A stretch of 64,000 nucleotides of DNA. It comes from Botryllus schlosseri. Its lineage: Eukaryota. Positions within the stretch are counted from its first letter, which is position 1; each line of letters begins with the position of its first letter. The translations under genes were made by a program, and so were the position numbers. Location of the stretch: positions 15,748,001-15,812,000 of the forward strand of contig CM119376.1 in assembly GCA_051294905.1 (NCBI GenBank), written 5' to 3'. The notes under the pieces were generated by a model. The model did no database searches, had not been told where the DNA came from, and saw only the letters and a list, made by a program, of their open reading frames with translations. This document shows positions 3,001 through 62,553 of the stretch, piece by piece.

Positions 3001-6000
3001 AGGGATACAGGAAATTTTGGATTATAGGAGTATGGCTCATTTCCCCTCTTGTATATCTACCGCTTCCGATCGGTAAGTATAAAACAGAATACAAGTATTG
3101 ATTTCTGTAATGAATGAAAGACTCGGTTGTACTCTAGTTTTCCTGGACGATTTTTCGCTTAAATCACAGGAGTCAAATTTACATGCAATTGCTCGCTGCT
3201 TGAATTTCACAGCCAATATATTTCTTAATTTTTACTCGCGTCGGTTTGTGATGCTTCCGAGTGAATCGCAGAATACTCTCAAAAACACAGTCATATATAT
3301 ATGCAGATGTTTACATCAATGAGGCATTGACGATACAATCACAGGCATCTCAAAGATATACCGATGAAATCAAAGATTATTTATTTTCTTCGTGCCCAGA
3401 CACAATTAAAATTTAAATGATTGGCCTGGTTCAGAGGTTTTCTTTCATCAATATTTCAATACCACGAGGAGACTTTTCTGGCGTGGCAAACGCGCGGACA
3501 AAGAGTGAGACAAAACGCGACAAAGCGAGCGACGGAAGTGAAGCGGGAAGACTCATCAGTCAGGTTACATCCTGACTTTGACAGTTTGCATTGCTTGCGG
3601 CCTCTTGAAATAAGGTTTACATTTCCTTGTCGGCCCATTATATGCGACGGACGGGTGTCAGCGTATAAGTCAGTGTAGAGTTCGCTATAAATAAATAATG
3701 CTGTTACCTAACATGTCATATGGATAATGGATATATATGGAGCCATGGTCCAGCTCTTTTTGTTATACTAATCATTGGCTATGTCATTCATGCTACTATG
3801 CGCGAATAGAGCAATTGCAGCGTCTTACGGGAGCAAATGCAAGGAAAACAATAAGTGGTATAGATTATACCTAATACAATACTTTTATTTCGGGGGAGAT
3901 GAAAATATTCCTCCCAAGATAAAACAATACTTCGGGCATAAATTATCCATGTGGAGGTGACACGAAGGAGTTGGGCCAAAATTGTCGTAATGAATTTAAA
4001 GACACATTTCGAGGGTGTTAGCGAAACATGCTTTCTGTCAAGCTCACGGGCCGCGGTTCAATATACTTTCGGCCCGATCATTATCGTATTACACATGATG
4101 TAGGCCGATATCGCTTCCAATTTTGCCAATGAGGTAATATAATGTACATCCGTAGAACGTACTGATGTTGAGAAAAAATAGTCTCTCTGGTGAAGAAGTA
4201 TAGGTAGGGTTGCATTTGAAACAAAAATCAATTTAAAACAAACATGTTTGAAATATGTTTCTTATTTTTTTAAGCAATGGCGTCACGGATATTAAATTAA
4301 TCATATTAAATTGTGACGTCATAGTGGATTGATAGATGGACATTGACAATTGATAATATAGGGTAAATATAGGCTTCTTTGCCCAAATATCTACGCACTA
4401 TAGCTGTTGAACCGACTATTATTGAGGGATCCAACCATCCCATATCGTATACGTCGGCTATCTCGGGTGGTAATTGTCCGTAGGCTGATACAACATGATT
4501 TTTGGAAAGTATTTACACAATTATGGCATGATTTTACAACTTAATAAAAACAATTTTTTAAAGGCCTTTGTTTTAAATACTGTTTTAAACGAAGTGTTTT
4601 AAACAACTATTTGTTTCGAATGCAACCCTAAGTATAGGCGTGCTTGTGAAGCGTTGTATATCTATAGATAACTAACCTACGCAGGTTAGTTATCGATGGC
4701 GTATCTGTCCGAGCAGAGGTATGGGACGGCATCGTCCCATGCAGACTTAACGCAAAATTCACGATAGCCGTAACTAATTGCTTTATCTTTTGAAATCTGG
4801 CGTCGGTACTAGTGTACGGCACGTGGATTTTGCGTCACGTGTCTTCGCAGTGACGTATTTGACGCCAAAATCTTATCTTCTTGCAGTGAAGTCAATTCGA
4901 AGGACAGCGTCGATAAATCGTTGCGACATGTTTTCGCCTGCAAGCGACCAATACTTGCGTGTCTACCTTGCTGTTCTTATCGGACTCCTGCAAGTCTTAC
5001 CGTTGGTTGTACTGACGGCATTTTATCGGTGAGCCGCGAAAATTTGTTTGATATCAATAATTTTGATATTGTCGACTAAATTGTCGGTTCAAATCTATCT
5101 CACGATCGCATTTTGCATTATCGACCGTTACATGCCGATACTCATTAATCTTTGATATATGATTGGAGTATACTTCCATAGTAAGAAGGGCTCCGAGGAC
5201 CTTATTCGATTGCGCGAAATATTCCCTAACTCCAGGAATTTGTACTTTCTTGTAGGGCGATGATTTTTGACATGTCAAAATAAGTCATAATTTTGTCAAA
5301 ATTGTAGGGTTAGGTCAAAAAATTGTCAAATTTTTTTGCAACCTGCATTTCGTTTTATTGTAGATGTTTGCACTGTCGGTGACCTTATAATTTGACATTC
5401 TACAGCATGGATAAAGAATTACAAAATGATCTCTGGCCCCCAAATCTTCAGCCGATGAGAGCAGATCTTTTGCTGGCTCAACACTTTGATACAAGCTCTA
5501 CTATGAATATCCAGCAATTAAACGTTTATGAACGTTCAAAGTTTGTTGCTCGGACGTGTCATCGGTCCCCACCCGGTGGGTCGGTATAAACACGACCTGG
5601 GGACCTATGAGAAATACGCTCAAAAACTTAAATGTTCCAACTTTTCTTGCTGTGTAATATAATCTAAGCTACAGCAAGCCGAAAAAGGATGTTTGGTCGC
5701 AACCGTCGATAAAATAGAATAAATAAAACCTTAAATGTTGTCATTAAATCACGTTTCCATTTAAGCACAAACTTACAAATTCGCGGGTACATACACATTG
5801 CCCGTAAATCGAGATTTTGACTTCCGAATAGCTCATTGGAGCGATAAAACATCGCAGGTATTTATCAAATACAGCGTCTGAGTGTAGGCGTGTTTCTGTT
5901 GTTGCATGACTAGTTGTCCAACTATTTTGTTTGATTTGGCTATAGAACGTTTACATTCTATAATTTGGCTATGGTATCATTGGCCTGAACTAGGATTACC

Positions 6001-9000
6001 ATATTTTTGAATCGGGAAAGGAGGACACTTGTCAAAATTTTCCAACTTTGGCCCTGTGTTTCACCAGAATTCTAAAAAAAGAGGACAAAATCTCAGAACG
6101 GAGGACATGTAGGCGTCCTCGGAGGACATTTTCAAAAACCGGAAAAAGGAGGAGAAATCCTCCTAAAGGAGGACGTATGGTAACCCTACCTAAACCGTAG
6201 AAATTATGTATTTGAATTGAAAAAATTCCACCCAAGGATGGTACTGAATGAAAAATATGTGCCGTTATATAGCCTGGTGTAAGCCCTACAGTCCGACACT
6301 TCACATTAGAAGTTATTGCTGGTTTGTTCGTGTTGAAGTTTACCAAGAAAAATGGATGCGTTGATCGAAATTTATTTTACACGCCCCAAAACAGAAAACA
6401 TCTGTCAAAGACCCCATTACTCATGAAGATGGAAGCTTTTGCACGCGAAGAAAGATTGTGCCAGCATGCAATTGTAGACAAATTCACGGAGTGCAATCAT
6501 GGGATTATCATGGATCATTTTTCAAGTATTTTCGGTCCCAGTGTCTCATCGCATCTACTCGGATAAATGACCTTTTTTAGTAAATTCACCAGCGATCAGA
6601 GTTAATTGAGTATTTTCCCGTATATATATATATGTCTTCTTTATCGAATCTGTAAATATTGGGGGGGGGGGGCGAAAATTTGTGTCGAGCTTGATATGGG
6701 GGCGATGAGTCGAAAAAGGTTGAGAACCACTGTTCTACAGCTTGTAGGCTTACCGTTGTATAAGTCCCATTGTCAGCTTATTGTGAATCATAAACGGTCA
6801 AATGAAAAAAATAGGTGAGATGGTGGTACGCTCAACTGAAGCAAGGCTGCGTGGGCATTGGTTCTTATATCAAGAAGCACATGATGGAAAATTTTGATGT
6901 AGACAACATTGTCAGAATGTAGCAACACTGTTTGTCACCAGCAGTGTACGCACAACTTCAGTGATGCCAGCCAACAACTGGTGCTTTTGAACGTTCTTTC
7001 TATATATTCTTGGGCAGCTACCTAGTAAGGACAGACACTTTCTACCCGAGAATATAGGAAAGTATCTTTCGTTGTACTGCAACAAATTTTATTCATTTCT
7101 TCCAAAATGCGTGATGTAACTACTGGAATTCTTCATAGGTGCAGATTTCGTTAAAATGAAGTTTTTTCATGTAGAAATTTGCCAGTTTAAAGTCAAAAAA
7201 GTTTTTCAGGCCAAACTACTTCGTGAGGTCATGCAGCTCCAACCAGAAATGGATAAAGTAGTACAATTCTAACATTATGCGCGAAAACACCTCATTTGGT
7301 AACGTGAGGTCGAAATGTTGTCAAAATTAAGTTTATTAAAGTCAAAAATGTCAAAATTTTGATTTTTAAGTTCAAAATCTTCTGTTGTTCAGGTAAAAAA
7401 AAATCGCCTCACTTATAACAGTACCTAGTGGTGATTTACATCTCTATTATTGTGTAGTAATGTTCTTTTCTCAACTTACGATTGTGTATGCGATAACCCC
7501 CGTGATCCTCGTTTCATTTTATTTAGGTCCTATACATAGGTGATATATTTCACAAAACAACGTAGACGAGACACGATAATAGTCAGTATGTATCAAGACT
7601 AAGTCACAAATGTAAATATATAAATTGCATTTCATCTTTTGGGGAATTTGTCTTTTGATGAAACGTAACTATTTGAAGGATTTAAGCCGACTGCTTGGAA
7701 TAGAAACAAGTTTATCCAATACAAGAACAGTGAAGGGATGCCAGGACTTTGGTGTAACCTTTACCGACCCCCACTTGGTAGTGATAATGTGAAAACGACG
7801 TTACCTCCGGAAAGTGAGGTTATGTACCCTTTGTTTTTATTTTAAAGATTGTTCTGCATCTTCAAATCATCGTTGTCAAAATTACATTAATAATAACAAG
7901 ACCTCTATCTCTAATAGAAGTACAGCGACGATCGATACTCTTATACTTTGAGCTCCAATTCTATGTATAATAGGCAGAAATGCATATAGCTGAAAGCTTT
8001 GTGTTCATTAATATTTAATACACGATGCTCTTAAAAACTCGCGGTTTATGGTGCTAACCAACATATTCTCCAAATACAAAGGGGGACCCTAATTTGGGTG
8101 ATTATAGTGTATTATCCAATGTCATACTTAATGGAGGTAGCTCCGATCGTAAGCATTCTGACACGAAAACTGGAGTAGGAGACTCCGCCTGTACTGTTGG
8201 GCAATACCCGCATGCAGACTCAAGAGTTGACGAAGCATCACAACATAAGTGTCGCATTGCAAAAGAATCTGCGTTTTAAGGGCGGGTGGTACCTTTTCTA
8301 ACTACGCGATGTAGGCCTAGGCCAAGCGAGCGCGCAGATTTGTCATAATTCATTTCCAATACCGTATTTGCAATGCATAGTCCTCCGTACCTTTGTGTAT
8401 ACGTAAACCTTACAAATGGCAATGAAGCATAATAGGATCCTATTTTCGAATATCGAAGGATTCGAATCTGTATTCGTTAAAAATAAATTTAAGAAACACA
8501 CACTAATGCACATCAGACGAATGTGATGAATATTTGATGAGCATATTCGAGGTAGGTGCACTAGACCATGATATATATACAGTTCGGAAATTATTTCATG
8601 ATGTCAGCCGCAAGAACCAAACATGCCAGGCGATTTGGAGAGATAACTTAAATATATGGAACAAATATGTTATATATGATATGCATGGAAAGATCCATAA
8701 CCACTCAAATGCATTATTGACTTTTGCGTGTGTACAAAATCCTTTATAATCGCATTATGCATGTCTGTGCAATGTTTACCAACACATATTTTAAGCTTTT
8801 ACTGTTTATATACCCTATTCATATATGCATAATATATAATGGATTTATTACAATGCATATATTGCAATAGAAAGTCACTTCCTAAGGAAGCAGATATGAT
8901 ATTTGGTACCAGTTTTCGAGTAATAGCAATATTCAATCATTTTAAAGTTATTACTTGAAGCGGGGCCTACTATAGTATCGTAGGCCCCGCTTGAAGCAAT

Positions 9001-12000
9001 TAATGTGGTATTACCCGGTTTAAATTGACACGTGAATCGCATGACAATGGATTCGCTCAAACTAGACCAACTTCGCCGTTATGAAATTACAATTCGAAAT
9101 CCCCGGTCATGCGTCTATTATTTGAACTATTTCTGATCTACGCCCAAGTCTGAGTTAGCTAGATACTTAATGGTGTCGTACTGGAGAGATATCTACACCA
9201 TTCGGTGTGTTTCAAGTCATTACATTATGATGAGATTGATTTTATTTTCTCAGTGCCATTTTAGCTAAGGTGAAGAAATGCAGGAAAACGGTGGAGCACC
9301 ATCCATTAACGAATACTCCCACGTGTTACGGGTCCTACTTGGGGAACTCTTGTGCAATGAAGAGCACGAATAGTCCCGAAAACAGCCCGGGACTAGTGAA
9401 GGCCCCTACAACCAGGTTCTCATTCCGACGGGGATCGTCGAAGAGATCCGACGACGAAGTCGCATGCGAAAAAAGTGATGAAATTAATGAGGGCAGAAAG
9501 GCGATAATAATGGCCTATTTGGAAGTACCATCGGCATCAATATCACCAAGGAAAAATCCGGGGGCTTTGTATAAGCGATGTAAGTATGTATAACACAATG
9601 TGATTTCAGTATCCCAACACAATTACGCATATATTCATCTTATGCTCGCATCATATGCAAATCTATCACAAGTCGATTGTTTAATCACTTGTTAAAATCT
9701 CTCTCTGGACAAAGTGACCATGAATGCATGTCCTCGTGAGATGCCAATAGGACAAAGTCGAAAACTAACTTTCTTCATCTGATCTCATTTCCACCGTCTT
9801 ATCGATGCTTATTCAGTCGCTTCCACGAAAAAGTAATTTATTCCTTTTTAAATTGCTTAAAAAGAAGTGTGAACTCATTTCATCCAGTCTGTATTAGACA
9901 CGCTTCGCAGAAATTTGTTATCGACCGAAATGTAATAACGCAAATCAATTCTCGTCACACGTCTTGTCGCGCGGAGCAAAACGCTTGTGCCTTGATGCAG
10001 CATCCTAAGGCGCACGAAAATCGAACCGAGGTGCGATATATTCAATGAAAACGCGATGTTCATATTTCAGCCCCGCCCCAGACTAGAACGATGATTGTGG
10101 GACGAGACAGCGAGGAGAAAAATCAGGTTTTAATATCCGGTACGACATCCTCTCCAAATCTGTTAGACAAATCTGAGGAAGAATCTTACGCCAACAGCAC
10201 CAGGAGCAGATCCACATTACTCTGGTGCAGACAAAGATCGTTTAGTACGGGAGGTATTTATCTCAATTCCTTGATGCAATAGGCCAGGGGTCGGGAACTT
10301 TTTTCGACCGAAGAGCCATATTGACCCAATCTTTCCAATTGTAACCCCTAAAGAGCAATACATGTCAATCAACAGTTACGTCACAATTGAAAATTTGTGA
10401 CGTATTGGTAGCACTAATATATGGGATTGATAGTGTGCACCATATTTGTCTGCCCACATGCGTAGGTGGAGCCAAACATGGTCACTACAGCCGTACACAC
10501 CCACTGCAGGATGTGATACGTCAGTGACGTGGGGTTAGGGGAGGCAAGTGAGGTAGTGCCTCACACGTCGTCAGGGATGAGCGAGGGAAAATTGTGAGAC
10601 CTTCAATGATGATATTTTTATCGATGTTTATGAATGATTAGATTTTAAACATTTCTATTCCCACAATCACGGAATTTTCATATTTATTGTTCGAAAATAA
10701 AGCGCAAAGGGAGAGTTAAGGCACAGTTGAGGCCAGGGCTTTGGAGCCGGAGCCGGAGCCCGGAGCCGGAGCCCCGGAGCCGTGCATTTTCACCGGAGCT
10801 GGAGTCGGAGCCGGAGCTCTTCATAAAATTTAGCCGGAGCCGGAGCTGGAGCCCGTTATTTGAGGAGTAGCTCCGGCTCCGACATATTTCATAAGATGCT
10901 ATTATATATGCAACAACCACATCTGCTGATTTATCATAATTGAACACCAGGCCTGAATTTTAATGCAATGCACACTTGCACAGCAATGGCACGGAGTAAA
11001 TTGCGTTCTAGTGCAACTATGGTGTTGTCGACAATTGACAAGTATTCAGTATGAAGTCACAAGCCGGCACGGTGGCACCTATATGTATTTGTTGCTACAT
11101 CGGATGTTACTGACGGCTGAGGACTCTAGATTACTATGGATAACTAACCTATTAGTAGATTAGTAATCTATATAGACCAGGAATGGCCAACCTTTCTGCT
11201 AAAGGGGCACATGCAATTGACGAATTGACGAGTGCGCGGTTCACTAGCCACGCCAAGCGGGTAAAATTTTCTAAGTTTATAAATAAACTAGGTGAGTATT
11301 GCTGGTCTATTGTATACCACCCGCGAGGCTCAGTTTGCAAGGACACGACTATTCGGCGTCTGGACACATCGATATCGAAGGTCTCCGATAATATGCGACA
11401 CTCATTTTGTGCCTGTACATTTCACCGTCGACGATTTTTATGCGAGCTCAAACGCGAAAAGACTTTCTTCCGTAATTGCGAATAGACTCAATCGGGCAAA
11501 TTAGGCGTTTTTTTTCATTTTCAGTAGGGAGTAGGCTACCAAGCAAGAAATCGTGTGACAATTAAACACGCGAAGCGTGAAGAAAAATTTCGCTACTATT
11601 TTAGATTATTGTAATGTACGACGATTTACTGAAAATGTGACTGGACCCTGGATCTGCCAATGCGTCGGAACTGATATTTTAGTCATCAACATCCCAAGTG
11701 TCGCAGCCAGAATTGTAATTTTTGGTTGGCATTGGAAGTTCACAATCCGAGCAATTCATTTTCCATAATATAATAGGACATTACCTCGCGGGCCACGCAA
11801 AACCCTCTCGCGGGCCACATTTGCGGGCCACCCCTGATATAGATAGCACCATTCTATAATTTCAGAGTCGGAGCCGGAGCTGGAGCCGGAGAAGTGGTTA
11901 TAATGCGGCTCCGGAGCTGGAGCCGGAGCTAATGTATGATAAAAGACAGCTCCGGAGCCGGAGCTGGAGCAGTTTAAATTTACGGCTGCTCCAAAGCCCT

Positions 12001-15000
12001 GGTTGAGGCACAAACGGGCGAAGCCTCACCTGGTATAGTGCAACTCATCGTAAATACCTTAGAATTTATCATCACTGATATTATTCGAATGAAATTTTGG
12101 ACTTCTAAACTATTCGACGTAACATAACATACCTACATTTTAGGGCGGTTCTAGAAAGCTACTTACGTTACCAATCAATAACCTGAATAGCTATGGCGTT
12201 GTTTTTAATTTGAATTTGTAATTGTTAATGTCACTTACAAGGAAGTTATTTATCGGCGTAGATCAGGAAGACAATGTGGATTTGAAAACTGCATTGTCCT
12301 ACAAGCGTCAGCATGTCAATGTATCAATTAGGGTATCGTGCAATCCAACATTTCGAGGCGCACGATGGCGGGCAGATCGAATTCGTCAGTGGTGCTAGTG
12401 GCCGGCGCGACAGCAAATTTGTGGATTTCGAAAAGGGGGTACGAATCCCTAACCCTGGGTACACCACTGTCTCGACCTCTCAAAGGCATGTTTATTCTGC
12501 CACGAGAATAATTATTCCGGCCGTCGTGAAAATTTACTAAAATATTGCTGCAATGTCGATAAAATTAAGTACAAAATTAAAAATTTGTCAAAGAGCCAAG
12601 TATGGCTCACGAGCCATAGGTTCCCGACCACTGCAATAGGGGAATGAATGTGTGTCGAATGGTATCCGCGTTTATGTCGATTGTTCACATCGTCCTTATA
12701 GATACAGTAATAACATATCAATGATATCATCGTCTTCGAACGTTTTTAGTCGACAATCCGTTACCATAATTAAGCTATAGAGTAAGACATTAGATTAGAC
12801 AATGGCAACTAATTCCCATTCCTACGGTTCGAAATATTAATCCATTGTGAATGTACTGCAAAATTCCCTTGCCGCCCAAATGGGATTGATTTTTAAAACA
12901 TGAAAACCAAGATGGCGGTAATAAGCACGTCATAACAATACAAATTGGATTGCATCCCCTTCATTATGCGTCTTGACTCGGATCATGCCGGTTAATTTCA
13001 CCAATTATGAGATTTATGTTGGTATTTTAGACGAAGAAATCGAGCCGGAACGGGGAATGGTCGGCGATAACGAGACTGATTTAAAGCAACAAACCTCCTT
13101 CACTCTAACGACAGGTGGATCAATTCAATCCTTAAACGACGAGTCACCCCAACAAAAGAAACAATCAGCAAACGCGAACGAAAAACGCCGTCCTATATTA
13201 GGAGGCAGGAAATTGCTCAACAGTCGGTCGGCCGACAATGAGCCTCTCATGCACGGGGTGCAGTATGAAGGGACAAATAACACAAGATTAAGCACCGATA
13301 GCCGAACTAAAGTCAACTCATTAACTTCAAACTCATTCCCCTCAAAATTGAACTCCAAATACAGCCTTTCCGGTAAATACCTCAGGATCCCGCACCCGAG
13401 CACAGATTCCATTGACGCGCTCGGACGGAATGAAGTCACCATTGGAGTAAATAGAAGACGCGTTCGGGCATTGACAAGACAAACTCTCGTGAATGAAGAA
13501 GATTTATTTACATGTATTACGGCGATAGATAGTTCGAAAAATGCATTGCCCACACAGAATGAAATTAACCATCACACCTCTCGCGAAGGACAAAGTTCAG
13601 AGGAGGGAAAACGTACGGAAAAAGAAACGCCCCAGGAAAAATCGTTCAATGGCGTTCAATCCACGAAAAAAGTAACGGACAGCCCAAAGATCCGGACTGA
13701 AAGCCACGGTTTGAATCTTTCTCCAAGTTTGAGTTATGTAGCGAGGGCAGAGCATTTCAACAAACCCAACATCGGCAATGATACCTATACCGACGACGAA
13801 CCGCAATCCACTTCGAAAAGGTTCATGTACCGTCGCGGAGGCAGCGACCGAACCGGCGCACGGTGGCTGGGTCGTTTTCGGAAAAGCAAAAATTGGTCGG
13901 TCACAAGTATGATACCTCCGAAGCTCAAGAACCGCAGCAACTCGCAATGCCAACAGAACAATGTCATAAAAATTGTGATTGATCACGCCACAGAGGAAAT
14001 GAGTGAGACCTGGCTGGGCGAGGAATTTGATGAAGCGGGAAGAATAGAAAAAGACGCACCGAGCGATGTAAGTAGAAGTTCGACCGAGTTCGAAAGGAAA
14101 AATTTAAGCATCATACCAGAACAATTAACGAACCCCACCGATAACTCGGTGGATAATAAATCGTCTAGTGAATGTGGAATCTCAAAACGGACTGACGATG
14201 CCAAAGCAAGTTCCGGGCTCTGGCGTTCTATATTGAAGGGAAAATGGAAGCTTTTGATTTCTAAATCCCCGCTCAGAAAAGATACGCCTAGAGACGCAGC
14301 TGGCACGAGCAAAAAAGCCGATATACTCGAGAATTCTCGCAGTACCATTACTGAAAAAGGAGACAATGGTTCAGCGAAAGAAATAGGGAAACATACCAAA
14401 CACCAGCAGCCATGTTTTACCCCCGAATTATGGTCCAACATAGTGGAAGGCACCAGTACGAACAGACCAGTCGTTATGCTGCCGATGCCCAGCATTCCAA
14501 TGAGCCCCTCGCCCAGTGTCACCAAATTCGACCCTCCCGACAGTAAGGCAAAGCAAGGGTTCTCTTTGAATATTCACAACATGGACAGCGGCGCTACCCC
14601 AGAGGAACAATCGGACTGCGACGACTCGGCCCGCACTTCGAGCAACTGCGCGCATCGCGACAGCGATTTGTCGTCCCGCGAAGACGCCGACCTGCTGCGC
14701 AAGCGTCGAGAGATGAACGCCTCGACGCAGTTCCTGCGTGCCAAAAATGTGCCGGGAAAATTCGACGACAACCAATCCATGCTGGACTTGAACAGCGTTG
14801 ACCTCGGGCGCCGATGGTCAATGCAGAGCGACGCGCTCTCCATTTACAGCGAGCGCATTGCCAGGCCGATAGAGAGGTCTCACTCGAACTGCAGTCGCTA
14901 CTCGCAAAAGCGGGCTTCGAGAAGGAGCAACAGCTCCGACAATCAAAGCGGCAGGAGATCTTTCCGCAGACACTGGTCTTCCAAGAAATCGTCCGTCGTT

Positions 15001-20200: not shown

Positions 20201-23200
20201 AAGGGACAACGCCATAGTGATACCAAATGTTGCGGTATTGATATTAAATATTTCATCAATTTTAATGCCATTGATATGGCTTCCAAAGTCTGCAGGAAGA
20301 TTTTGACAATAGTCCGAAATCAAATTTTTATACAGATGGAACTTACTAAAATGGAAAAATATCGTTAATGATGGAAATTCACCGAGTATACAATGACGGG
20401 TATATAATTATTGTAGTCATTTCGCATTGACCGGATTATATTCATCTCTACATCCTCCCTAACGACATTACCTTGCATAAATGCCTTCGTCGTGTTAAAC
20501 GCTAAGCAAGAATATTCTGAATAGCAGTGTTCACAAAGTCTTCGATCTGATCAGGACCCGGTTTTCTCGATCCAAAACTGGCTATCAGCTATCGAATATG
20601 GGTCATACGGGTTGTTTCGTATGTCAAGCAAAGGTAATTCGAACTGCGTTTCTCTGTCACTGAGGTGTGTTACACGGGGGGTACATCTATACACGTGACA
20701 TATCCGAATTCCAAGTAAACGAAATTTTCTTTAGGAAAAACAGTCGATTACCGTATTCCTTCAATATCAATAGTTAGTATATTTCGTCAGAGTAGGTAAC
20801 ATCAATAACCTATAGCGAGATTGGATTCCGTCCGATATTTACGATTCAATGCGATGATGATCGAATTCTAAAATGTCCCTCGGTATATATGAATAGTTTC
20901 GTTTGCTTTGTATACTAACCATGCGCATTGGATCGAATGGATTTTTAATGTTAGTTATCGCATATATATTGGGCGACGACAACTTCATGACATATTTACT
21001 GCTGTTGAATAAAACAGCAAAGCTTTCCTGTCGCCAAATAAATATACCTGTCCAAAATACCGGGGGTGGGATTAAACAAGTATGTGGGCGGTATAGATAT
21101 TAATGGAGTCATTTCAGCATCTCTACTCCTTGTTAATCATTTGTTGAAAGGCGTAAATCGGCCAGTACTTTGGATTTTTTTCACTCACAGATTGTAATGG
21201 ACGTCGGCCATATTTCCGCGCGCTGCCAGCGCATTGAGATAGCAACCTTCCGCGTCTTTAATCCTACCGGATTCTTTCATCACGTTCCCGAGATTAGACC
21301 AGGATTTAGCGGGCGACGTTGAAATGCCCGACCTGAAAAGGGGATTAATACTGAGTGTGCGCCACTTTGGTGAATTTGCTCGACACGGTTTCCATACTGC
21401 AGTACAAACAAAGGCATGGGGCGCTTTATAATGGATATATTACTAAGCAAAATAATGAAAGCGCGAGACTTGAAAATACATCCTGTATCGGAGGTTTTGG
21501 CTGATTTCAAATTGGGTCTTGGAATTTTATAATATGATTATTATCGGACGACTTCATTCACACAAACTCCCATTCTGCAGCATCGTTTGATTTCACGCGT
21601 CCTTCTCAGATTATTTTCCGCCTCGTTGTCGCACGGCTATCTTTCTCTCTGCACGCTATAAACGTAAAAATTGTGTAATCTACCGATTTTCACCCCGCCG
21701 CAAGATGCAAATAAAGTCATCAGCACCGGTACAATATGTTGCTTTCACATCCGTTCCATGCAATTGGCGCAATAGTAAAAACATGGTGCACGTAAGCATA
21801 GCCCACCGCACTCACCCCTGGCATATATCTCCGTAAGGGTTGGTGTCCTAGAAATAGCCGATAGTCTGATTCACACCTTACGCTAAGGAGGTAATATGGT
21901 GAATACACCTATTCTCCACCCATGCATTTACATTGCGTGGCTTTTATACGCAATCCGCAGTCACAACTAGTCCAGCGATGAGGGAAGACCTGACTCAGGT
22001 CTACAAGGCCTAAGTTATTGTACGCCACTTCATATATAGCTGCTAGTCTTCTACAGTTGGCAGTCAGAATAGTGTATGAGCCTGCTTTACGTATTAATTG
22101 AGCGATTGACAATACAATGGAATGATGATAACTTGCGAACGCACCGGTACAAATGATATTGGTCTTGCCAGTCGAGGTTCCGATGAGTAGTGCGTATCGC
22201 AAGCAGCATCAATGCAATGATTTGCAGCCAGAAGCTGACTCGTGAGATGCTGAAATAAAGATTTATGTGTGGTTATCGAGAAAAGATGTCAGAGGCATGA
22301 TGGCTTTCTTCTGGCCTGTTCTTGAATATTGCGGATTGGAAATATGTTGTAGATGCCTGATCGGTAGATTACTGGATTGATGTCATATTGTATATCAGGG
22401 ATATCTAAATATATCCCTGTTGTAAATAGGGTTGCATTTAAAGCAAAATTCAATTTGAAACAAACATGGTAGAAACAAGGCCCTTGTTTGCAACATTTTT
22501 TTCAAGCCATGGCGTCACGAATATTCACGTGTGACGTCATAGTAGATTGACATTGACAATTGAAAATAGAGGGTAAATATAGCTCTTTTGGCGAAATATT
22601 TGTACTATTGCTGTTAAATCGACTATTTTGAGGGTTCCAACCATCCCATATCGATTTACGTCGGCTGTATCGCGTGGTAATTGTCCGTACGCTCATACAG
22701 CATGTTTTGTGGAAAGTATTTACCCAATTATGGCATAATTTTACAACTTGAAAAAAAAAATGAAAAGGCCCTTGTTTAAAACACTGTTTAAAACATGTTT
22801 CAAAATGAAGTGTTTTAAAACACCGTTTGTTTTAAATGCAATCCTAGTTGTTAATGGATATAATCTATAAAAATTCAACTACAGGTTGCATCTCTGTAAT
22901 TTAAGGTTTGAATCACATCCGGATCCTCTGAATTTTTCGTCACGGATTGACTGATTGACTGAAGATTGATGAATAAATTGAATATGGATGCATTTACAAC
23001 GTCTGGTTTCAAGTGACCCGTTCATCTATACTCGGTACTCTTCACGCAATGATATAATTCTGATTTTACCTTGGGAATTGCCTTTTCCATCTTTTATTAC
23101 TGAGATGATCCACGCAGAATTGCCATCCGTAAATGACCAGTATGCAAAATCCAGCACTCGGCAAATACAAAATGCGCTCGGCGATGATGAAACCAACGTA

Positions 23201-29200: not shown

Positions 29201-30147
29201 AACAAAAAGTCAATTTTCCAACCCAGCTCCCGAAATACCCGTAGAAGCGTTACTTCGATGCTGAGTTGCGGTGTTTCAGTCGATTTTGGCCGTGTAGTCC
29301 ACCAAAATCGAAAATACTTTCATGAAAAATCGAGAAAGTTGCAAAATGTTGCAAAAAGTTGCACGAAAAAAATGGACAAAAGTAGCAAAAAGTTGCACTA
29401 TAAGATTCCTTCAAACAGCTTAAAACAGCATTCTACATATCTTACGAGTATTTAGGAAGCTGCCGGAAGCTGTAGAAAAAAGTTGCAAAAGTTGCAAAAA
29501 CTTATGCCCTACTAATGAGTAATAACTCGCTATATATATCAACGCCAAAACAGCAATGTGTTGCAATTGTAGACTTTCGTGCGATGGAACGTTTTTCCCG
29601 TAGCCATTTCACGATAATACTATTGTCAGTTCTGGGATTCCAAAATAGGGCCTCATAAAATCCGTTGATACCAGGCCTAGATCACAGATTCAAAAGTTCC
29701 GATATGGTATTTTCGTTGGGCCCTTTAAATGAATAACAAGATTATAGTTTCTGCCAGTAACCACCACATCGGCTAGCGGAAACACAGACCACCTGAATAT
29801 ATGAACATGAACAATGAATATCGATCAAACGACACTGCGGCATGACAACCCTCATCATTTATTAGGGATGGAAAAATTACAACTTGCATAGCCTTACCAC
29901 ATTCAAAGAAATGCCAATGACGACTTGAAATGAAAATTATGATTGACAAGTATAAACTGAAAAGCTAGTATCTAGATCAGTGGTTCCCAACGTGGGCGAT
30001 ATCGCCCCCCAGGGGGCGATTTGGCGATCTAGGGGGGCGAAAATGACGAAGGGGGCGATAGGGGGGCGAAAATGAACAAAGGGGGCGACGGGGGGCGAAA
30101 ATAGCGAAGGGGGCGATAGGGGGGCGATGACGCGTCAAAACGGCTGA

Positions 30148-30178
<31 letters not shown>

Positions 30179-33100
30179 GTCATCCACCTAGCAATTCGGA
30201 GAGAAAAAAACGTTATTTTCAGCTCTGAGCGGAGAAAGATGACCTTTTTTTTTTTTTTTTTTAGTCAACCCGCCGGTGATTACAGTCTGTATGCCCAATT
30301 ATCGGTGCACAAAATTTGGGGGGCGATGATCGGTGTTGACCTTGAAAAGGGGGCGATGGGTCGAAAAAGGTTGGGAACCACTGATCTAGATGGAATGACG
30401 CACGTCATTCATTAAAGAGTAGGCTACTCCACGCTAAGGAGGGGCCCTATTCATGAGGATATTTCGGTTGCACACATCATAATTAGTAACATTGATCACA
30501 ACACAATGCTCAGGCTGGCGCGAGTATTACCGATAATCGTGTAACGTGATAAAAGTAACGAGACGTGGTTCAACGGTGAATGAAAAGTATGATTTTTCAT
30601 TAAATCTATAACTTGTGTCATCAATATTTAATGTAGGGAAGTTGAATTGGTTGAATGGATATCTAACGGTAATAACATCAAGATATAAAAATAATTACAT
30701 GAAACATATACTAATTTGCGGGTCTCAAATTACGATGCGCAAACCTTCGGGTTTGGGCCCAATGTACAAGGCTCTAATTCGCCTCATGCATGTATTTCAC
30801 GTGTGCAACAATACTGTTCGATGTGATGTGCATGTCGTGTGTAAATGAAATTTGCGGGGACATATATTAAGGGCGGAATCGGGGCCCCGGCGGAATGCTA
30901 CAGAATATGTTTTTCTATATCTACGCTTCTAGCATCGATATATCGCAGTTGCACTTGAGGTCTAAAACGGTAATATGCAAGTGTGGTCAGCAATGTTCCC
31001 TCTAAGCTGCGCACGTGCGCAATTTCACAGTGCTGACACGGTCTCTGCGCACAAAACATCCGAAGTGATGACCATTTTTTAGTCGTTACGCACTGTTGTC
31101 CAAGGGACCGCGCAGTGAGTTGGTGAGTGCGCGCAGACTGGTAAAAAATTAGAGGTAACATTTGTGGTCAGTACAGTCCTGCAGACTATAGATAGTCGAG
31201 AATCCGCATAAATATATCCAAAAATTATTTTATAATAATTGAGCCTTCAGGTTACACGATTTTCGGGTCACTGATTTCAGATTTATTTATTTTGTACCTT
31301 AGTATTATTATTACTATTATTGATTGCTCAGAATGAAACAATGTGGCGCTTATCACCTTAACGGTCCGGTGCGCCATGATCAAAATCTAGCTATCATTCA
31401 TCAGCTCCGCTCTTTTTGGGCTTGGTATGGCGCTCACTAAACGTCACAATTTAGATAAAAACAAAACTGTAATTGTTGAGACATAGACAATTACGCACAC
31501 CCGTGAGGAAAAGGAAAATCTTAGTCAACACTACAAACAGTACTACCTTATTTTGTTTGTGAATTAAACGGATTACAGTTCGAGGGTAAACTCATCTCGC
31601 CACGGGAAATTTTCCACAGCAAGTCAATTTATTCCGTATCGCGAAGCCCATGCGCAGTGCAGTCTACACACACATACGAATGGCAATATATATCGGGTTT
31701 ACGACTTCTCGAAATGCATTTTTTGCACCAGAAAAATACGTTCAAGTTTGCATGAAACTAACCGCCGATTACACTGAAGTCAACAGTGAAAGAATTACGA
31801 ATATGCGTCCGAAATAACGTCATAACAGTCATCCTGAAATATGATTGACAGACAATATTCCATCGGTAGACGTATCGTATTTTTAAAAATGAAGGCTCAT
31901 GTAAAGGTAGCCGCGTAGCTGTCAATTATATTTGAACGATCTTTCTTATTCACGTTCTCGCGATGCCATAACGTACGATATTCTTTCGTTCCACCTCCAT
32001 AACAAATAGGTAGGGAGCCTGAGAATTTAACGGGATTAGAAACCCTTGCGTGGACCGATAGAGCAGGGTGTTGGTAAACACCAATATTAAATTGGGTCGC
32101 TGAGATAAATGAGGTGATGAATAATCGTGAGACATACATAAAGGAAGGATTAAGGTCTCGCAAAGTGATGTGATAACGCGAAACCTTCTTTACAATGTTT
32201 GTTCCAGATGGTTCCGTTCCAGATACACAAAGACAAGTAGGGAATTCAAACACTGCAATGCATCACCCAAAGTTATCCCTTTCCCCCGTAATGAGAACGC
32301 CTTGTCAAGCCGTCAATTCGTTACCTGATCTAATTTTGAGTTTATACAAATCATTATTCACAGCCCTCGTACAGAGCCACGATTACCGTGCCATAAGGAA
32401 GAGTACTGCACTGGGCGGGTAATGCATTGCTTGTTACATGTTTAATTGAATTACGCACCTAACGTTGGATTTTGATGTACAAACGCTGTCATTTTTGATG
32501 CGATAACGCCCTGTGATTTGATTTGAGGGAGAGGATGCGCCCGGATCCGAATGACATGATGCGACTGATCGATACTAATCATATATCAAGTATTTGTAAA
32601 GTTATAAGGATCAAAATTTGAACATGGAAACTTCGGGCTCACATTAATTCAATCGCGCCCTGAACAAGATCATTAATAAGAGAATGCTCCAATGTCTTTT
32701 TTGTTTGTTTTGTTTTATGAATACTGCCTGTGAAAACGCTGATGCCTGAATTACACTCAACAAACAAGAACTTACGATTAAACATTTCACATTTTCGAAT
32801 CATTTTTCAACGTTCATACTAAACAAATTCATACGTCTATAATGTATACATAGCTCTATAACATGACTTATTTCGTTTATGTACGTCAGACTAAGGAATA
32901 TAAGGTCGAAGCATGGGTAATTTTAGAAAATTAGACGCATTCAACGGCGCTTTAGACTGTTGTCCGAGTAATTTTCCTCTCCAACGAATAAGCACGAGTA
33001 ATGGTGGTGTGATCAAGGGGGACTTAAAAGAGAAATATGGAAAAATCCGCCTATGATCCAATACGTTACCTAATCCCATTGAAGATACTTCAAAGGACCA

Positions 33101-33772
33101 CATGAGTCGTTATGCCATGCAATGGTTGTGACAGTTTTGTGTTGTCTAGAGAGACGTCTTACCATATAGTCTCAAATACTGCCCAGTCTCAAATACTGCT
33201 TCGTTTGCAAACACTGCAAACGATCATTCGGGGCCTACGATATCGTAGGCCCCGGATCATTATGTTTGAAATGCGTATTTGAGCCTCCACAATTAAATCC
33301 TTATCAAACATTTCCCATCAAAGGACTTTGTTTCAATGATTGAATAGGGAACAGCAAACAATCTGTACGCGATCAAAAGCCGTGACATGTCACTTATTGG
33401 AGATAAGACGTTTTGTATCAAAGTTGTGGAAACTTTGTAACCGAACGCCAGACATTGTTGGAAAAAATCGGAACTATTAATACGCAACCGAAGTGACGAA
33501 TGGGACAATAAAAGAAATCAATAAAACGACGGTTGATTAAACAGAATATTTTGCGCGTTCGAAACCCGCTTATCTTTCTGAATTATACGGAGAGCTTGAC
33601 AGGTATGCTGGGTAATTTTGTGTGAACATTCACTCTTGGGGAAAATTTCTAAAACATTAACGAAAACGTGTTTTTCTTACTTGTCATCGTATACGAAACC
33701 AGCTTCCAGAGTATTGATATAAACCAGAATCGCGAATCCAGCGGAAATCGCAGCTTCTGCGTATGGATGCAT
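17280..33772 (-). CDS. TMTC2: Protein O-mannosyltransferase TMTC2-like (GT-C TM domain, DUF1736, TPRs); 3' end uncertain
   Basis: Exons (minus) 33772-33681, 27134-26997, 26265-26114, 25859-25767, 25694-25264, 24085-23070, 22249-22145, 21332-21189, 17448-17301 (or read-through to stop at 17280). Phases are consistent; 773 codons to 17301. Motifs: NTLEAGFVYDDNRAI, NDYWGTPMTHSGSHKSFRP (THSGSHKS is TMTC2-type), HPIHTEAVAGIVGRAD, SKETG, FSSSDNPA, NLFFYVGFIIAERILYLPS, RNLDW. TPRs: AKSWSNLGNV, NMADVHYNLGLL, AYLNSGIVL. Confidence 0.92.
18052..18277. mobile_element. Degenerate hAT MITE with actcga/tcgagt subterminal motifs
   Basis: Ends tagggctgggca / tgcccagcacta; TSD only 5/8. Related fragments near 57930 and 59417. 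Confidence 0.55.
22396..22419. mobile_element. 24-bp TIR-only mini element (CAGGGAT family)
   Basis: cagggatatctaaatatatccctg with 9-bp perfect arms; flanks ttgtatat / ttgtaaat (7/8). Confidence 0.6.
22427..22846. mobile_element. hAT MITE, TAGGGTTGCATT family, short subtype
   Basis: TIR tagggttgcattta / taaatgcaatccta; TSD gttgtaaa / gttgttaa (7/8). Confidence 0.88.
29073..29511. mobile_element. hAT MITE with aaaagttgc subterminal repeats
   Basis: Ends tagggcaagtttt / aaaacttatgcccta; perfect 8-bp TSD ctaatgag. Confidence 0.88.
29978..30383. mobile_element. Buster/Charlie-type hAT MITE
   Basis: TIR cagtggttcccaac / gttgggaaccactg; perfect TSD atctagat (TCTAGA-type target); gggggcga repeats and poly-T tracts. 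Confidence 0.92.
30991..31163. mobile_element. hAT MITE (CAATGTTCCCTCTAA termini)
   Basis: Ends caatgttccctctaa / ttagaggtaacattt; perfect 8-bp TSD gtggtcag. Confidence 0.85.
33229..33254. mobile_element. 26-bp perfect palindromic micro-insertion (CGGGGCCTAC family)
   Basis: cggggcctacgatatcgtaggccccg flanked by a perfect 7-bp direct repeat, gatcatt. Confidence 0.8.
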
Positions 33773-35004
33773 TCTGCGTTACAGCTTCAAATTCACAAGC
33801 GATAATTCAACTACATATTCGCATTTTCTGAAATGTCAAATTACAGATCTAAATATTGTCAGATTTAACATAATGACATTGCACGGGGTGCGGGTGGAGA
33901 TTAGACGCGTCATTTTCACCATTTTGTCTCGATGCCTACCAGCATTTTTGAGACAGACAAATCAAATAGGCAACTGAGCATTTTCAGTTGATAGCAAACC
34001 ACGGATAGCATACTGTACGGGACGCAAGCGTGAATATGACGCGAATGTAGCAAGTATCAAAACTATAAGTATCATGGTCTGCCACTATTTAGATAATTGT
34101 ATTGTATATGCTATTTCACATTGAGTGTGCAATAGGCATGCCTCTTTCAAAGCGCTTTTTTCGTTCTGCTACAATATTTGTAGCAAATTGTAGGCCAAGG
34201 TGGCATTTTGATTGACTGACGTCGCTACGTCGCTCGACTCCTTTCATTCTTTCCACTGCATTACAACACTTCTTGTCGCATCTTTAATCGAAACAATTTG
34301 AATAAAAATGATGATGATGATGATGTTTTGTCCTCACTTCGTAAATAATCCTGTTTGCATACAATCGAAATTGACGAGCAATAAATCGATAACCAGGTAT
34401 CACAACTTTCGACACAAACACCTATCGTACGCTACAAATACGTAAAACCTGGCCTTTTCGCCTGATCGTATTCCGTGTCAAATTTCCAACCTGCTCTACA
34501 ACCGATTTCGGTCACATTGGCACAACTTTGTCTATGTACTAGATAACGTAATATACTCAATAAATTAGATTTTTGGGGTACAGGTTGATAAGCTTTAGAA
34601 GTTAAGCTGCAAATGTAGTACGATCTTGATTCCCAGGCTATAATTCCGTCTCGGCGCTAAATTTGAGATTACTTTTCTCATGTACCGTAACGTAGCGACA
34701 TATTCACTAATCTACTTTTACGAAATGACTTGTCTTTGGAACGCTACCTACCTACACCATGCGATAGTGCTATTTGTCCAGCTGACTAGACGCCCGCACG
34801 AGATGCCAGTTCGGCATTCGCAATGAAGCGTATGACATCGGGTAAGCCAATGTTTCGTTTTCGATTCGCTATGATTTCGCGCTGGTGTGATCGCTCAGTG
34901 ATCTTGCTCTGAACAGACGGCGTTTTAGCGACTGTAAGCGGACGTACATGTCTATTCTATAGTCACGCTAGAGGTCATATATCGTCATCAAGCATAATAG
35001 AAGT

Positions 35005-37893: not shown

Positions 37894-39129
37894 CAGGGAT
37901 GTCTAGAGAAGGGCCGTAACAGCACTTCGTCAGCCCTCCCCCCCAAAACGTTGGTCTCGGGCCCCCATAGGGTGATAAACCGGACTTCTGGGGGGCTTCG
38001 CCCCCCAGACCCCCCTCAGCCTCTACGCTATTTCCGCTGTTTGTCATCTGGATTAACTGTGAGTAACACTGTCTCATCTAGCCGCGCCGAGCGCGAAATT
38101 TTTTTATAATTAATGATTGAGTCGGTCAATATGATCGAGAATTGCATATATATTGCTGTCAATTTTTATCCTCTCTCTGCTCACGTATTAAGATTTACTG
38201 GTAGAGCGGAGTGAGGTGTGTTTGAAAAGGTAGGACCACTCATCAATAATAATAATTAAACATATCCGGGCGTATACCTTTAGGAAGGAACGAAACAGTG
38301 CTTCGTCAGGCCCCAAAAGAACTTGGGTCTTGGGCTCCCATAGGGTGATAAACCGACTCTCCCCCTCCATCACGTTGTTCGCTTTTACCACGTAATTAGT
38401 TATATTATTCAGTGAGCACGCGCGAAGTGCGAAAATTTTCAATGATTCATTATAAAATCAGTCAATAAGATCGAGAATTGCATATATATTGCTATCAATT
38501 TCTTGTCCTCTCTGCTCGCGTAATCAGATTTACCGGTACAGCTGAGTGAGGTCTCTTGGAAACTGTAAGACCCGTAAATAATAATTAAACATCTTCGGGC
38601 GGGCGGACCCGGTGGTATGACTTCGTTACATGATGTTATTTCGTGACCTCCGCAATATCAAAAAATGTAGAATCGCATAAACGTACTAAACTATAACAGT
38701 CATTTAGGCGCCTATGGACATTGGACAATTAAACTTATATGTATCGGCATAAGCGCAGTACTTTTCGGCCAAGGTTTTCTCGCTGCCGATCGTTCTGGCC
38801 CATCTCTTGGAGTCGCATGTTACATAACCTAAAACTTCATATCTCGGTTTGACGTGGCGCGGTAATGACCAACGTCGGTATGCCCATTTCATAAACCTTG
38901 CGTATTTTTTCTTAGGTGAAGAGTACCCAACAATCAAGATATTTGGCAACCAGAAATCGCGCGGAGCGCGAAAATTTTTTGAAAAAGCTGCATAAATTTT
39001 CAAAAAATACTCTATAATTTTGCTAATTTACGAAATAATTTTGGGCCCCCTTCGAGCTCGGGCACCCCCCAATTGGGGGGTTTGGAGTGCGGCAGTTACG
39101 GTCCTGGTCTAGAGTTCTAGATATCCCTG
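37894..39129. mobile_element. 30-bp CAGGGAT mini element interrupted by a 1.2-kb hAT insertion
   Basis: Removing 37909-39114 restores cagggatgtctagagttctagatatccctg; flanks gagtatac / gcgtacac (6/8). Confidence 0.7.
37909..39106. mobile_element. Buster-type hAT element (CAGGACCGTAAC termini) with an internal ~190-bp duplication
   Basis: Ends aagggccgtaac / gttacggtcctg; perfect TSD gtctagag; internal direct repeat ~38085-38275 vs ~38415-38600; homologous to 62007-62553. Confidence 0.82.
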
Positions 39130-49580: not shown

Positions 49581-49620
49581 CAGGGATTTCTAAAACTTCT
49601 AGAGGTTCTAGAAATCCCTG
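49581..49620. mobile_element. 40-bp TIR-only mini element (CAGGGAT family)
   Basis: cagggatttctaaaacttctagaggttctagaaatccctg; arms match 15/16; flanks atcaatac / atcaatat (7/8). Confidence 0.75.
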
Positions 49621-56300: not shown

Positions 56301-59300
56301 GCGTTTTGTGATATGACGATAAGGGGGCGCGAAATCTTTCACCATCATAAGGGGGCGGGACGTGTTTTAAAAAATTTGAGAACCACTGATCCAAGGTAAA
56401 TACTTAATATCACAGCGGGATAGCTGCAACGAGATTGAGATAATTTGGATCACCAGTGGGATTTCAGATTGGCCACTTCATTTTCATTTTTAATTATTTC
56501 AGTGATGTGCTTATAAAAAACGATTCGGACGTGTCTTAGGTAGATTCGTTGTCTGTATGCGTAGAATGGGGGTATTTATATTTTATCTGCACATAGTACA
56601 AGCGTGTTTGAAGCTAACATGGTTATGATGCTGTCAGCATTGTGTGTCCTGGAACTGAGCCAAAAGTGGAATTACTAAATCTATGAACAGATCGCTCCTC
56701 ACAGATTTATATTTCAATCCTGTTCTAAGAATCGGGCCAACCGACTTTCATCTGTATAGTTTTGACAATGGTTATTGAGGTCCGCCAGCCTATGAAATCT
56801 CGCCACTGTATGTTTCAGACGCGTGTTAGATATCATCAAAGCAATATTTGGCTTGCTTTAAATAGCACATATATTGTCTCCATGTCCTCACTATATAATC
56901 AAATATCAATATTGCGTTTTGGTTTATAATCCCAATTTTATATAGTGCGGCCCGCGAATGAATTCAAATTTTGAATGCGGCCCGCGAGCTCAAAAGTTTG
57001 CCCACCCCTGCCCTAATGCGAGCAACTATGAAGTCACAACCTATTGTATTAGTATACGAGACGAATTACTGTTTCTATGCACGCTATCAATGGTTTTCCG
57101 CTTGATACATATACGAATTGTCACACATTACTTGTCAGTGCGTAGTTGTTGTTATTTGGTGTATCCATGGTGTTTGTCGACTACTATGGTCAGTTACAGC
57201 AGGCCAATTTACTTCATTTTTATTCTGTGGCTGCCGACTTGTAGCACGGCCCACGTCTAGGCATTTATAAAACACCGCTTCCGCGAATGAGATGGCGACG
57301 AGGAGCCCAGACAAACCTCCAACACTTAGATAAGAATACGAGGGTCGACCTCGGTCGGACTCGAAACCGTAGCCCATTGGTGTTGCAGCTGTGGATTATA
57401 CCACTACGCTATCTCGCCACTCAGTGCACACTGCACATTAACTCGGTACTCAAGCGGCGTGATAATTAGTGACTGAACAGCTGCGTTGGAATACGAACAT
57501 ACAGCATTACTTGTCGAACAATATTGATGCAACACCAGATTCGCGGTTGCACAAATTTGGAATTTTTTTCGATCGATTTGAACGTGAACCTTCTATATTC
57601 CATTAAATTTGATTGCCCTCGGCCCTTTTCACTAATAGTTATCTCGGGTTCTATGATGACTTATCGTAGGCCACGGCTACATTATCACCGTAGGAACCTT
57701 GAACCTGCATTAGTATAGTATCACAGCATCAAAACATAGCACAGAGGTGCGCAGTGCGCACGTATCAGGAGAAGCTAAATTTCCATTGAGATCAGCCCGC
57801 AGCATTGTCACAAAGTGCAATGGCATATGTGCGGCCTAAATATACTAAAATTAGATTAATTGTGATGATGACTGGCATAATTGCAATGTGGTTGCAAAAA
57901 GAAACATATTATTTGAACTTTCCGCACCGTTCATACGAGTAATACTCGAATTTTCGAATCGACTCCGAATCGAATCAACCAGGTATGCCCTAATAACGAG
58001 CGCACCACAGCAATTTTAAACCAATGAGTATTTGGTAAGAAGCGGATTCCTGTGGACAAGGTCGCGACATGCTGTCAATCGTTCTAGTTGCCGTTGCCCA
58101 TGAATAATCGCACCATTTCCTTACTATATTTGACTTCATGCCGCGATATCAATGTGTGCAGTGCAGGTATTAAAACATCACATCAGTACGATATACATTG
58201 CCATATCATGCGGATAAGACCAATGCCATGTAATAAAATGTGTTATTTTGGTGCGATTCTGAGAGGTTGTGATGTCAAAGGACTGTAACCGCACTGAATG
58301 AAAATTTTCTCGCAGATCCGACACAAGCAGTTGCTTCAGTCGTAGTGACAGTGTGGATGAACGTGATACGTCTGTACCGAATACTTCAAAAGGATTTGTG
58401 GAAGAATTGAAGATTTACATCAGTATTCATAATAATGTCGAGTCCGACCACCATCAGGGGGGTCAAGATAACGAAGACAAATTATAAAGTATCTCGAAGC
58501 ATAAAACAAACTACTGGGATCACAAAGCAATAAAAAGGAATAATGACAAAATAACTAAGTGCAGCAACTCACCGAGTCTCCTCTTCGCAACCCGTCACCA
58601 CAATTGCTGGAGTTGCTGATGGAGATGATGACTGACAGGGCCTTTCGTGCGTAGGAAGTACGCTTGATTTCATTTCGCTAGGCACCGTTCGAATAACGCT
58701 ATCTACGTCCGTACTGGAATTACTGTCTTCGACGAAATGTTTTCCCGAATTTGGTAATGTGACGTATTCGGATGTAGGGAACGATGACGACGAGATGCAC
58801 GACTCGCTTGACGTAGCGAAACTAGCGGTGTGTTCTAAAATGGCGGAAGTTTCACGCTTCGACCACGGTGATGGTGCGATTAATTTTGCCTGCGATTCTT
58901 CGAGGTGGCGCTGTATGTTATCTCCAAACTTTCCCATATCTCTGTAGTCCTTTGACCTTCAGTATACATCAGAAGATAAGCAACGTTTGAGTTTATCATT
59001 TATTTATTATCCATTTATTGAGTTAAAACTGCGCTTCGTCGCGGAATACACACCATTTGAACGGGGTTAGCCTGCTGACCAACGGCATGAATGATAGCTC
59101 GTATGCGCATTTTTTTCACCACTAATATTGGACTCGGACGAACTTTTATTACTGACATTTTTTAATGAGCGTTGTATAATATCCCAATATATTCGTGGGA
59201 AAGAGGGATAATGTAGTATCTTTTATTAAGCTGCTGCCAATGTTAATTACGTGTGCGCGCGTGACCAATCTATAGGTCTACGCCGTGAAATACGACTAAC

Positions 59301-62006: not shown

Positions 62007-62553
62007 CAGGACCGTGACTGGGGCACCCCAAACCGCACAATTGGAGAGGGGCGAGCTTGAAAAGGGCCAAAAATTATTTTGCAAATGAACATAAATCATA
62101 GCGTAATGTTTTCAAACTTTTTCCAACATATTTCAATTTCTTTTCGCGCTTTGCGCGATTTAGTGTCACTAAATGTCATGCTTACAGGTGCCCTTTTCCG
62201 AGAAATACGCATTATTTATATAAATAGGCATTTCGGCGTCAGCCATTACCGAGCCACGACGTACCAACACAAGTTCAGGCTAACTTGGAACTCCGAAAGT
62301 TGTGCCAAAATTCGGCAGCGAGAATACCGATTCAGTCATGAATGATCGAAAACTCTCTGCTTACACTGAGTAGAATGAATGTGCTCACAAGTACAGGTGA
62401 AAACATCCATTCAACAGTAGGATCTGGGGGCGAAGCCCCCGGAAGTTTGGCTTATCCACTGTGGGGACCCAGGACCGGCGTTTTTTGGAGTGAGCCGGGG
62501 CCTACGATATATCGTAGGCCGCGGGTGAGCTGATGAAGTAATTTTCGGCCCGG
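62007..62553. mobile_element. CAGGACCG-family hAT MITE nested in 61845-63066
   Basis: Both ends are homologous, in reverse orientation, to the ends of 37909-39106; TSD not clear. Confidence 0.65.
62496..62523. mobile_element. 28-bp palindromic micro-insertion (CGGGGCCTAC family)
   Basis: cggggcctacgatatatcgtaggccgcg; flanks agtgagc / ggtgagc (6/7); absent from the homologous site near 37930-37945. Confidence 0.75.

Follow-up and report, generated by a model that had tools for sequence, protein, structure and literature searches.

Short palindromes scattered over the 64-kb window (by which we mean the whole stretch of Botryllus schlosseri DNA analysed here, 64,000 nucleotides long) are probably scars left in place by the excision of a P-like (P superfamily) family of cut-and-paste transposons, a reading to which we assign a probability of about 0.7. 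The palindromes have a common anatomy, are flanked by 7-bp duplications, are insertions, vary in the sequence at which their two halves meet, and have further copies elsewhere in the genome. At that same confidence, their interpretation shifts from a mobile micro-element to an excision scar, which would extend a known kind of repair product to a family and a host lineage in which it is new.

Anatomy of the palindromes

Three palindromes of 26–29 bp share the outer arms CGGGGCCTACGAT. Read directly from the sequence, they lie at 8961-8989, 33229-33254 and 62496-62523, exactly where an earlier note on this DNA had placed them, and its observation that each copy has a 7-bp direct repeat of its own was also borne out, the two repeats agreeing at 7/7 positions in the first copy (c1), 7/7 in the second (c2) and 6/7 in the third (c3). 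Their contexts are unrelated, as had been claimed: the flanks of different copies bear no likeness to one another. The three copies, together with a probable fourth, are laid out as follows (TSD, target-site duplication):

8954..8996: putative scar c1; TSD CTTGAAG at 8954-8960, 29-bp remnant at 8961-8989 (CGGGGCCTAC TATAGTATC GTAGGCCCCG), TSD CTTGAAG at 8990-8996
33222..33261: putative scar c2; GATCATT, 26-bp perfect palindrome at 33229-33254 (13+13; CGGGGCCTACGAT ATCGTAGGCCCCG), GATCATT
62489..62530: putative scar c3; AGTGAGC, 28-bp remnant at 62496-62523 (14+14; CGGGGCCTACGATA TATCGTAGGCCGCG), GGTGAGC
57638..57682: probable decayed fourth scar; 31-bp remnant at 57645-57675 (CGGGTTCTATGAT GACTT ATCGTAGGCCACG)

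The copies had been described as perfect palindromes of 26-29 bp; the lengths stand, but only c2 is perfect, c1 being imperfect at its centre and c3 carrying a single arm mismatch (CCGCG in place of CCCCG). The centre of c1, previously given as GAT(AT)ATC, is in fact TATAGTATC, so that c1 is an imperfect palindrome, and its remnant resolves into a 13-nt tip with one G>T change, the bases AGT, and a second 13-nt tip. Together, the three young copies have accumulated only two substitutions in ~80 arm positions, and the zero substitutions in c2 suggest that it is the youngest. The pattern GGCCTAC-N(0-20)-GTAGGCC has 3 matches in the window, as against 0.00 expected from 100 dinucleotide shuffles.

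When the window was searched for the tip with mismatches tolerated, a copy beyond the three of the earlier note came to light at 57645-57675. Its right arm matches the 14-nt tip at 13/14 positions and the abutting inverted left arm at 10/14; by hand calculation, ~0.02 14-mers with at most one mismatch are expected per window, and the abutting inverted 10/14 match has p ~0.002. The flanks, GTTATCT and GCTACAT, are identical at 4/7 positions, with T/C transitions making up 2 of the 3 differences, and in a folding check the 31-bp remnant no longer formed a hairpin. We regard it, from these matches, as a probable decayed fourth copy.

All four copies share one layout, a tip, a centre and a tip: 13+0+13 in c2, 13+2+13 in c3 (AT), 13+3+13 in c1 (AGT) and 13+5+13 in the fourth (GACTT). 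Length variation is thus confined to the centre, the outer 13 nt being the same throughout. Arm lengths are about 13-16 nt and never exceed 17 nt, and the remnants total 26, 28, 29 and 31 bp, all below 34 bp. The tips end in GAT / ATC, which permits ATAT-type pairing, and the TSD sequences of the four copies show no shared target consensus. When the DNA is single-stranded, the palindromes of 26-29 bp can fold into stable hairpins; as scars, they are probably without function.

Insertion status of the palindromes

Site 3 provides an internal empty-site control, which the earlier note had pointed out and which proved to be real. Copy c3 sits, again as that note had it, inside a MITE, here an old hAT-type non-autonomous element (61845-63066), and a minus-strand paralogue of this old host repeat, near 37,900-38,010, lacks the palindrome and has the flanking 7-mer once:

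37933-37939: empty-site paralogue of site 3; a single GGAGGGC, versus AGTGAGC + 28 bp + GGTGAGC at site 3

Similarity between site 3 and its paralogue resumes on both sides of this point (on the left ...GACC..CGTTTT..., on the right TGA[C/T]GAAGT...CGGCCC) in an alignment made with a long-gap penalty; MAFFT misplaced the gap. The palindromes are insertions with target-site duplications.

Copies in other samples and at further loci

Logan contigs of four public runs (X1, X7, X8 and X11) were compared with positions 31800-34700 of the window. Contigs from two of the samples (record 3 of X1 and record 22 of X8) span the site-2 palindrome free of gaps; recovery of this copy from independent runs shows that it did not arise in assembly. 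The contigs of X7 and X11 break at site 2. Among the contigs of the four runs, all of modest length and many of them ending at the palindrome, we found neither an empty allele nor a long-insertion allele of this site. In X7, three separate contigs (records 15-17) match the palindrome alone and then run into unlike sequence, while in X1 the summed depth rises from ~12 to ~60 over the site-2 palindrome, where 13 records fit both strands. The palindrome-only contigs and the rise in depth together imply at least a dozen further loci in the genome with the same core. The exact 26-bp form recurs at further loci, a recurrence that does not separate a scar from a mobile unit, because a microhomology join would recur too.

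One X1 contig matches the window only to the right, starting at 33237; the 144 bases before that point are unlike it and end in ...GGTTCAATCG, after which the contig reads ACGATATCGTAGGCCCCG. These 144 bases may be the end of a long parent element. If the tip were CGGGGCCTACGATATCG, pairing of two 17-nt tails across the 8-nt palindrome CGATATCG would yield exactly 26 bp (17+17-8).

Other features of these contigs deserve mention in their own right. Record 16 of X7, which lies outside the window, has a copy of the 26-bp palindrome with a 10-bp inverted repeat (ACCTACAACT ... AGTTGTAGGT) ~21-22 nt out on each side and with immediate 7-bp flanks that agree at 4-5/7 positions; here a scar may lie inside a further small element with inverted repeats. 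Near 33681, ~430 bp downstream of c2, the contigs of X7, X8 and X11 diverge leftward into the same 255+ nt of other sequence, and in all three runs contig depth is several times higher on the right, a pattern suggestive of the edge of a repeat or of a structural variant. Part of the locus is present in a marine metagenome run, and a search by way of the small frames that overlap the scars found no contigs of other individuals on record.

Search for a parent element and a transposase

Inverted pairs of the 14-nt tip were sought with at most 4 mismatches and a TSD agreement of at least 5/7, and a general scan for terminal inverted repeats (TIRs) with TSDs was run in addition. Beyond the palindromes themselves and one 3.8-kb pair of tips, which stands alone and looks like chance, the 64-kb window holds no longer element with the termini of the palindromes. 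That the general scan works on the sequence of this window is shown by its recovery of six non-autonomous elements of hAT type, each with a perfect 8-bp TSD.

Neither Pfam, applied to the 38 longest open frames, nor a regular expression for the THAP zinc finger revealed a transposase in the window. The only Pfam domains in those frames are those of a GPCR and of TMTC, and two long frames without a Pfam match resemble disordered protein in an Atlas search. Among named homologues of the large GPCR frame, the closest is that of the ascidian Styela clava, and the named homologues near the head of the match list for the TMTC exon are from fishes. The palindrome had 0 matches in JGI metagenomes, IMG/VR viral contigs and GTDB genomes, and a literature search for the string CGGGGCCTAC returned unrelated primers only.

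hAT-type and other elements in the window

The hallmarks of hAT elements are an 8-bp TSD and CAG/TAG (YARNG) termini. The window is rich in hAT derivatives; the termini of the six elements recovered by the scan are TAGGG, CAGGG or CAGTGG, and a family with CAGGGAT[A/T]TCTAAA termini has left remnants made only of tips alongside a longer relative in one and the same window:

606-1544: non-autonomous hAT-type element, perfect 8-bp TSD
4205-4630: non-autonomous hAT-type element, perfect 8-bp TSD
10734-12001: non-autonomous hAT-type element, perfect 8-bp TSD
29978-30383: non-autonomous hAT-type element, perfect 8-bp TSD
55894-57010: non-autonomous hAT-type element, perfect 8-bp TSD
61845-63066: non-autonomous hAT-type element, perfect 8-bp TSD; holds putative scar c3
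22396-22419: TIR-only hAT-type remnant, 24 bp; 8-bp TSD with one mismatch, CAGGGAT[A/T]TCTAAA termini
49581-49620: TIR-only hAT-type remnant, 40 bp; 8-bp TSD with one mismatch, CAGGGAT[A/T]TCTAAA termini
37894-39129: longer relative with the same CAGGGAT[A/T]TCTAAA termini, 1.24 kb; flanks GAGTATAC / GCGTACAC, agreeing at 6/8
63249-63614: 366-bp element; termini T(T)GAAAATATAG, with a direct repeat of 7 or 9 bp (TTGACAA / ATTGACAAT)

The two TIR-only remnants were probably made by abortive gap repair or by a route of the foldback-erosion type. The element at 63249-63614 could be Mutator-like if its direct repeat is the one of 9 bp. A palindrome of another kind lies at 1437-1456, where a perfect 20-bp sequence, ATGACGTCACGTGACGTCAT, combines a CACGTG E-box with two CRE-like TGACGTCA sites that overlap it. 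This sequence is a possible promoter element, situated ~200 bp upstream of a frame that matches 7tm_1 (1650-1964).

Discussion

How might such palindromes arise? A long parent transposon would once have stood at each site, and on inserting there it would have created a 7-bp duplication of the target. When it was excised, a transposase of the P type would cut the 3' end of the transposon exactly at its boundary and the other strand deep within the TIR, with a stagger of ~17 nt, so that each flank would retain one copy of the TSD and a 3' single-stranded tail made of the TIR tip (CGGGGCCTACGATA...). The two tails would be identical and non-complementary; they would end in ...GATA(T) and could pair solely by way of a short internal palindrome (ATAT, GATATC). 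The ends would then be joined, either as they stand or after trimming or the addition of some filler bases, in the order TSD, tip, variable centre, tip, TSD: pairing in the ATAT/GATATC register would account for the remnant of 26 bp, a 2-nt register or blunt joining for that of 28 bp, and the addition of one to five filler bases for those of 29 and 31 bp. The product would be a near-palindrome of 26-31 bp, always shorter than 17+17 = 34 bp.

The steps proposed here have a precedent in Drosophila. The hallmark of the P transposase is a 17-nt stagger, one strand being cut 17 nt inside each TIR (PMC7776569), and such a cut leaves identical, non-complementary 3' tails on the donor flanks; end joining at these 17-nt 3' tails after P excision is credited to Beall and Rio 1997, as cited in PMC7776569. 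The P excision junctions sequenced by Chan, Yu and McVey in 2010 have an 8-bp TSD at either end and, inside it, no more than 17 nt of TIR on each side of a centre of microhomology or inserted bases, their rows reading acccagac-CATGATGAAATAACAT-(inserted bases)-ATGTTATTTCATCATG-acccagac (PMC2895639). The palindromes resemble these footprints closely: (i) both copies of a TSD, in the 7-8-bp range, are retained; (ii) what lies between is solely the outermost 17 nt or less of each TIR, the two tips being joined at microhomology or through a few extra bases; (iii) the junction varies between independent events, of which the window offers only four. They differ from them as well: the TSD is 8 bp in Drosophila and 7 bp here; the terminal sequence is unrelated (CGGGGCCTACGATA here versus CATGATGAAATAACATA in P); the Drosophila footprints come from a laboratory cross, whereas the palindromes described here have become part of the germline genome of a wild marine chordate, in which they are fixed; and neither a parent nor its transposase was found here, within the 64-kb window. 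A 7-bp TSD is typical of Galileo and 1360, which both belong to the P superfamily (PMC4168063), and is thus a feature that the palindromes have in common with both, although Galileo copies range in length from hundreds of bp to several kb, have long TIRs and have a reported target consensus of GTANTAC, and the palindromes show no such consensus. P/THAP9-type genes have been reported in the urochordate Ciona (PMC7776569).

Transposon origin, in the form of two abutting TIR tips between P-like 7-bp TSDs, was already part of the earlier note and is retained here; what we do not retain is its proposal that the palindromes were mobilised in trans or were hairpin oligonucleotides inserted into the genome. 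Its suggestion of a hATw-like source also fails: c1-c3 have a 7-bp TSD and termini that start with CGGGG, unlike hAT, and on TSD length and termini we rejected a hAT assignment. We likewise rejected a reading of the palindromes as circle junctions, which would abut outward-facing ends (...GTAGGCCCCG then CGGGGCCTAC...); the ends here face inward.

Several other explanations have to be set against the excision scar. That the palindromes did not come from transposons at all, being chance palindromes, assembly or adapter artefacts, or a protein-binding motif spread in some other way, is scarcely credible, given the 0 matches expected by chance, the 7-bp flank repeats that match at 7/7, 7/7 and 6/7 positions, the presence of the site-2 copy in independent runs and the different flanks of the different copies. 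A more serious contender holds that the 26-31-bp palindrome is itself a non-autonomous unit of two TIR tips, moved in trans by a transposase with a 7-bp stagger; in a stronger wording, these would be the smallest eukaryotic transposons known, two abutting 13-nt tips served in trans by a P-like transposase. Its TIRs and 7-bp TSDs, the empty paralogue that shows its insertion status, the several copies per 64 kb in a window with no long relative, and the same 26-bp core at further loci all agree with it. We nevertheless consider it improbable in either wording. The four copies have four centres and nearly unchanged arms; the cleavage sites would be separated by 26 bp of stiff duplex and oriented away from one another, and a single transpososome could presumably not synapse them; and a known repair product already accounts for every feature. 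P elements, moreover, require internal transposase-binding sites beyond the TIR, which in Drosophila take up more than 100 bp per end. The palindromes share with MITEs their TIRs and TSD, their lack of coding sequence and their occurrence in several copies, but at 26-31 bp they are well below MITE sizes, and whereas descent from a master copy would give one sequence throughout, interior included, they have no internal sequence and their centres differ in all four copies, as those of repair junctions do.

Another route to a remnant in situ would dispense with direct joining of the cut ends: either gap repair was abortive, synthesis from the sister copy stalling after the tips and joining following, or a foldback was eroded stepwise, through central deletion of an unstable Galileo-like palindrome. 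Neither form requires a superfamily that cuts with a long stagger. We hold both forms of this route to be unlikely. Most of the recovered Drosophila P repair products arose by incomplete synthesis followed by end joining (PMC2895639), and the window itself contains TIR-only hAT-type remnants (22396-22419 and 49581-49620) with a 1.2-kb relative at 37894-39129. Like the palindromes, these remnants are two abutting TIR tips between target duplications; unlike them, they have an 8-bp TSD, CAGGGAT... termini and a longer relative in the window, and a P-type stagger would not explain them. Excision of hAT elements is not known to leave TIR tips; if it leaves none, a route independent of a long stagger must also operate here. 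Such a route, however, predicts a broad range of lengths, including derivatives of 50 to several hundred bp, whereas all four copies of the palindrome measure 26-31 bp and longer derivatives are absent from the window.

In favour of the excision-scar reading, the same tips around four different centres point to independent end joining at four former insertion sites, a pattern that would not be expected of copies of a master element, and the absence of longer or internally deleted relatives from the window fits direct joining of cut ends better than gradual deletion. Several points count against it. Neither a parent element nor a transposase was found in the window, and the metagenome, viral and prokaryotic collections searched contain no palindrome of this kind; the exact 26-bp form recurs at further loci, as that of a mobile unit would; the four runs compared show no empty or filled alternative allele at site 2; the observed arms (13-15 nt) are shorter than 17 nt; and four scars with no parent in 64 kb call for efficient excision or an extinct family, which is plausible for a non-replicative element, each move of which leaves a single scar.

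Ordinarily, past excisions cannot be seen in a genome, as most superfamilies leave just a few bases behind. If the palindromes are scars, such remnants would constitute a fossil record of transposon excisions: their counts would measure the movement of a cut-and-paste family, to be compared with the copies that are left, and the maximum arm length would report the cleavage stagger of the transposase without biochemistry. In annotation, such palindromes should then not be labelled as MITE families. The kind of repair product is already known, and it is the family and the host lineage that would be new: outside insects, nature would have kept a record both of excision and of the long-stagger cut of P type, in which the long-stagger cut of the fruit-fly P element would be conserved in a chordate relative.
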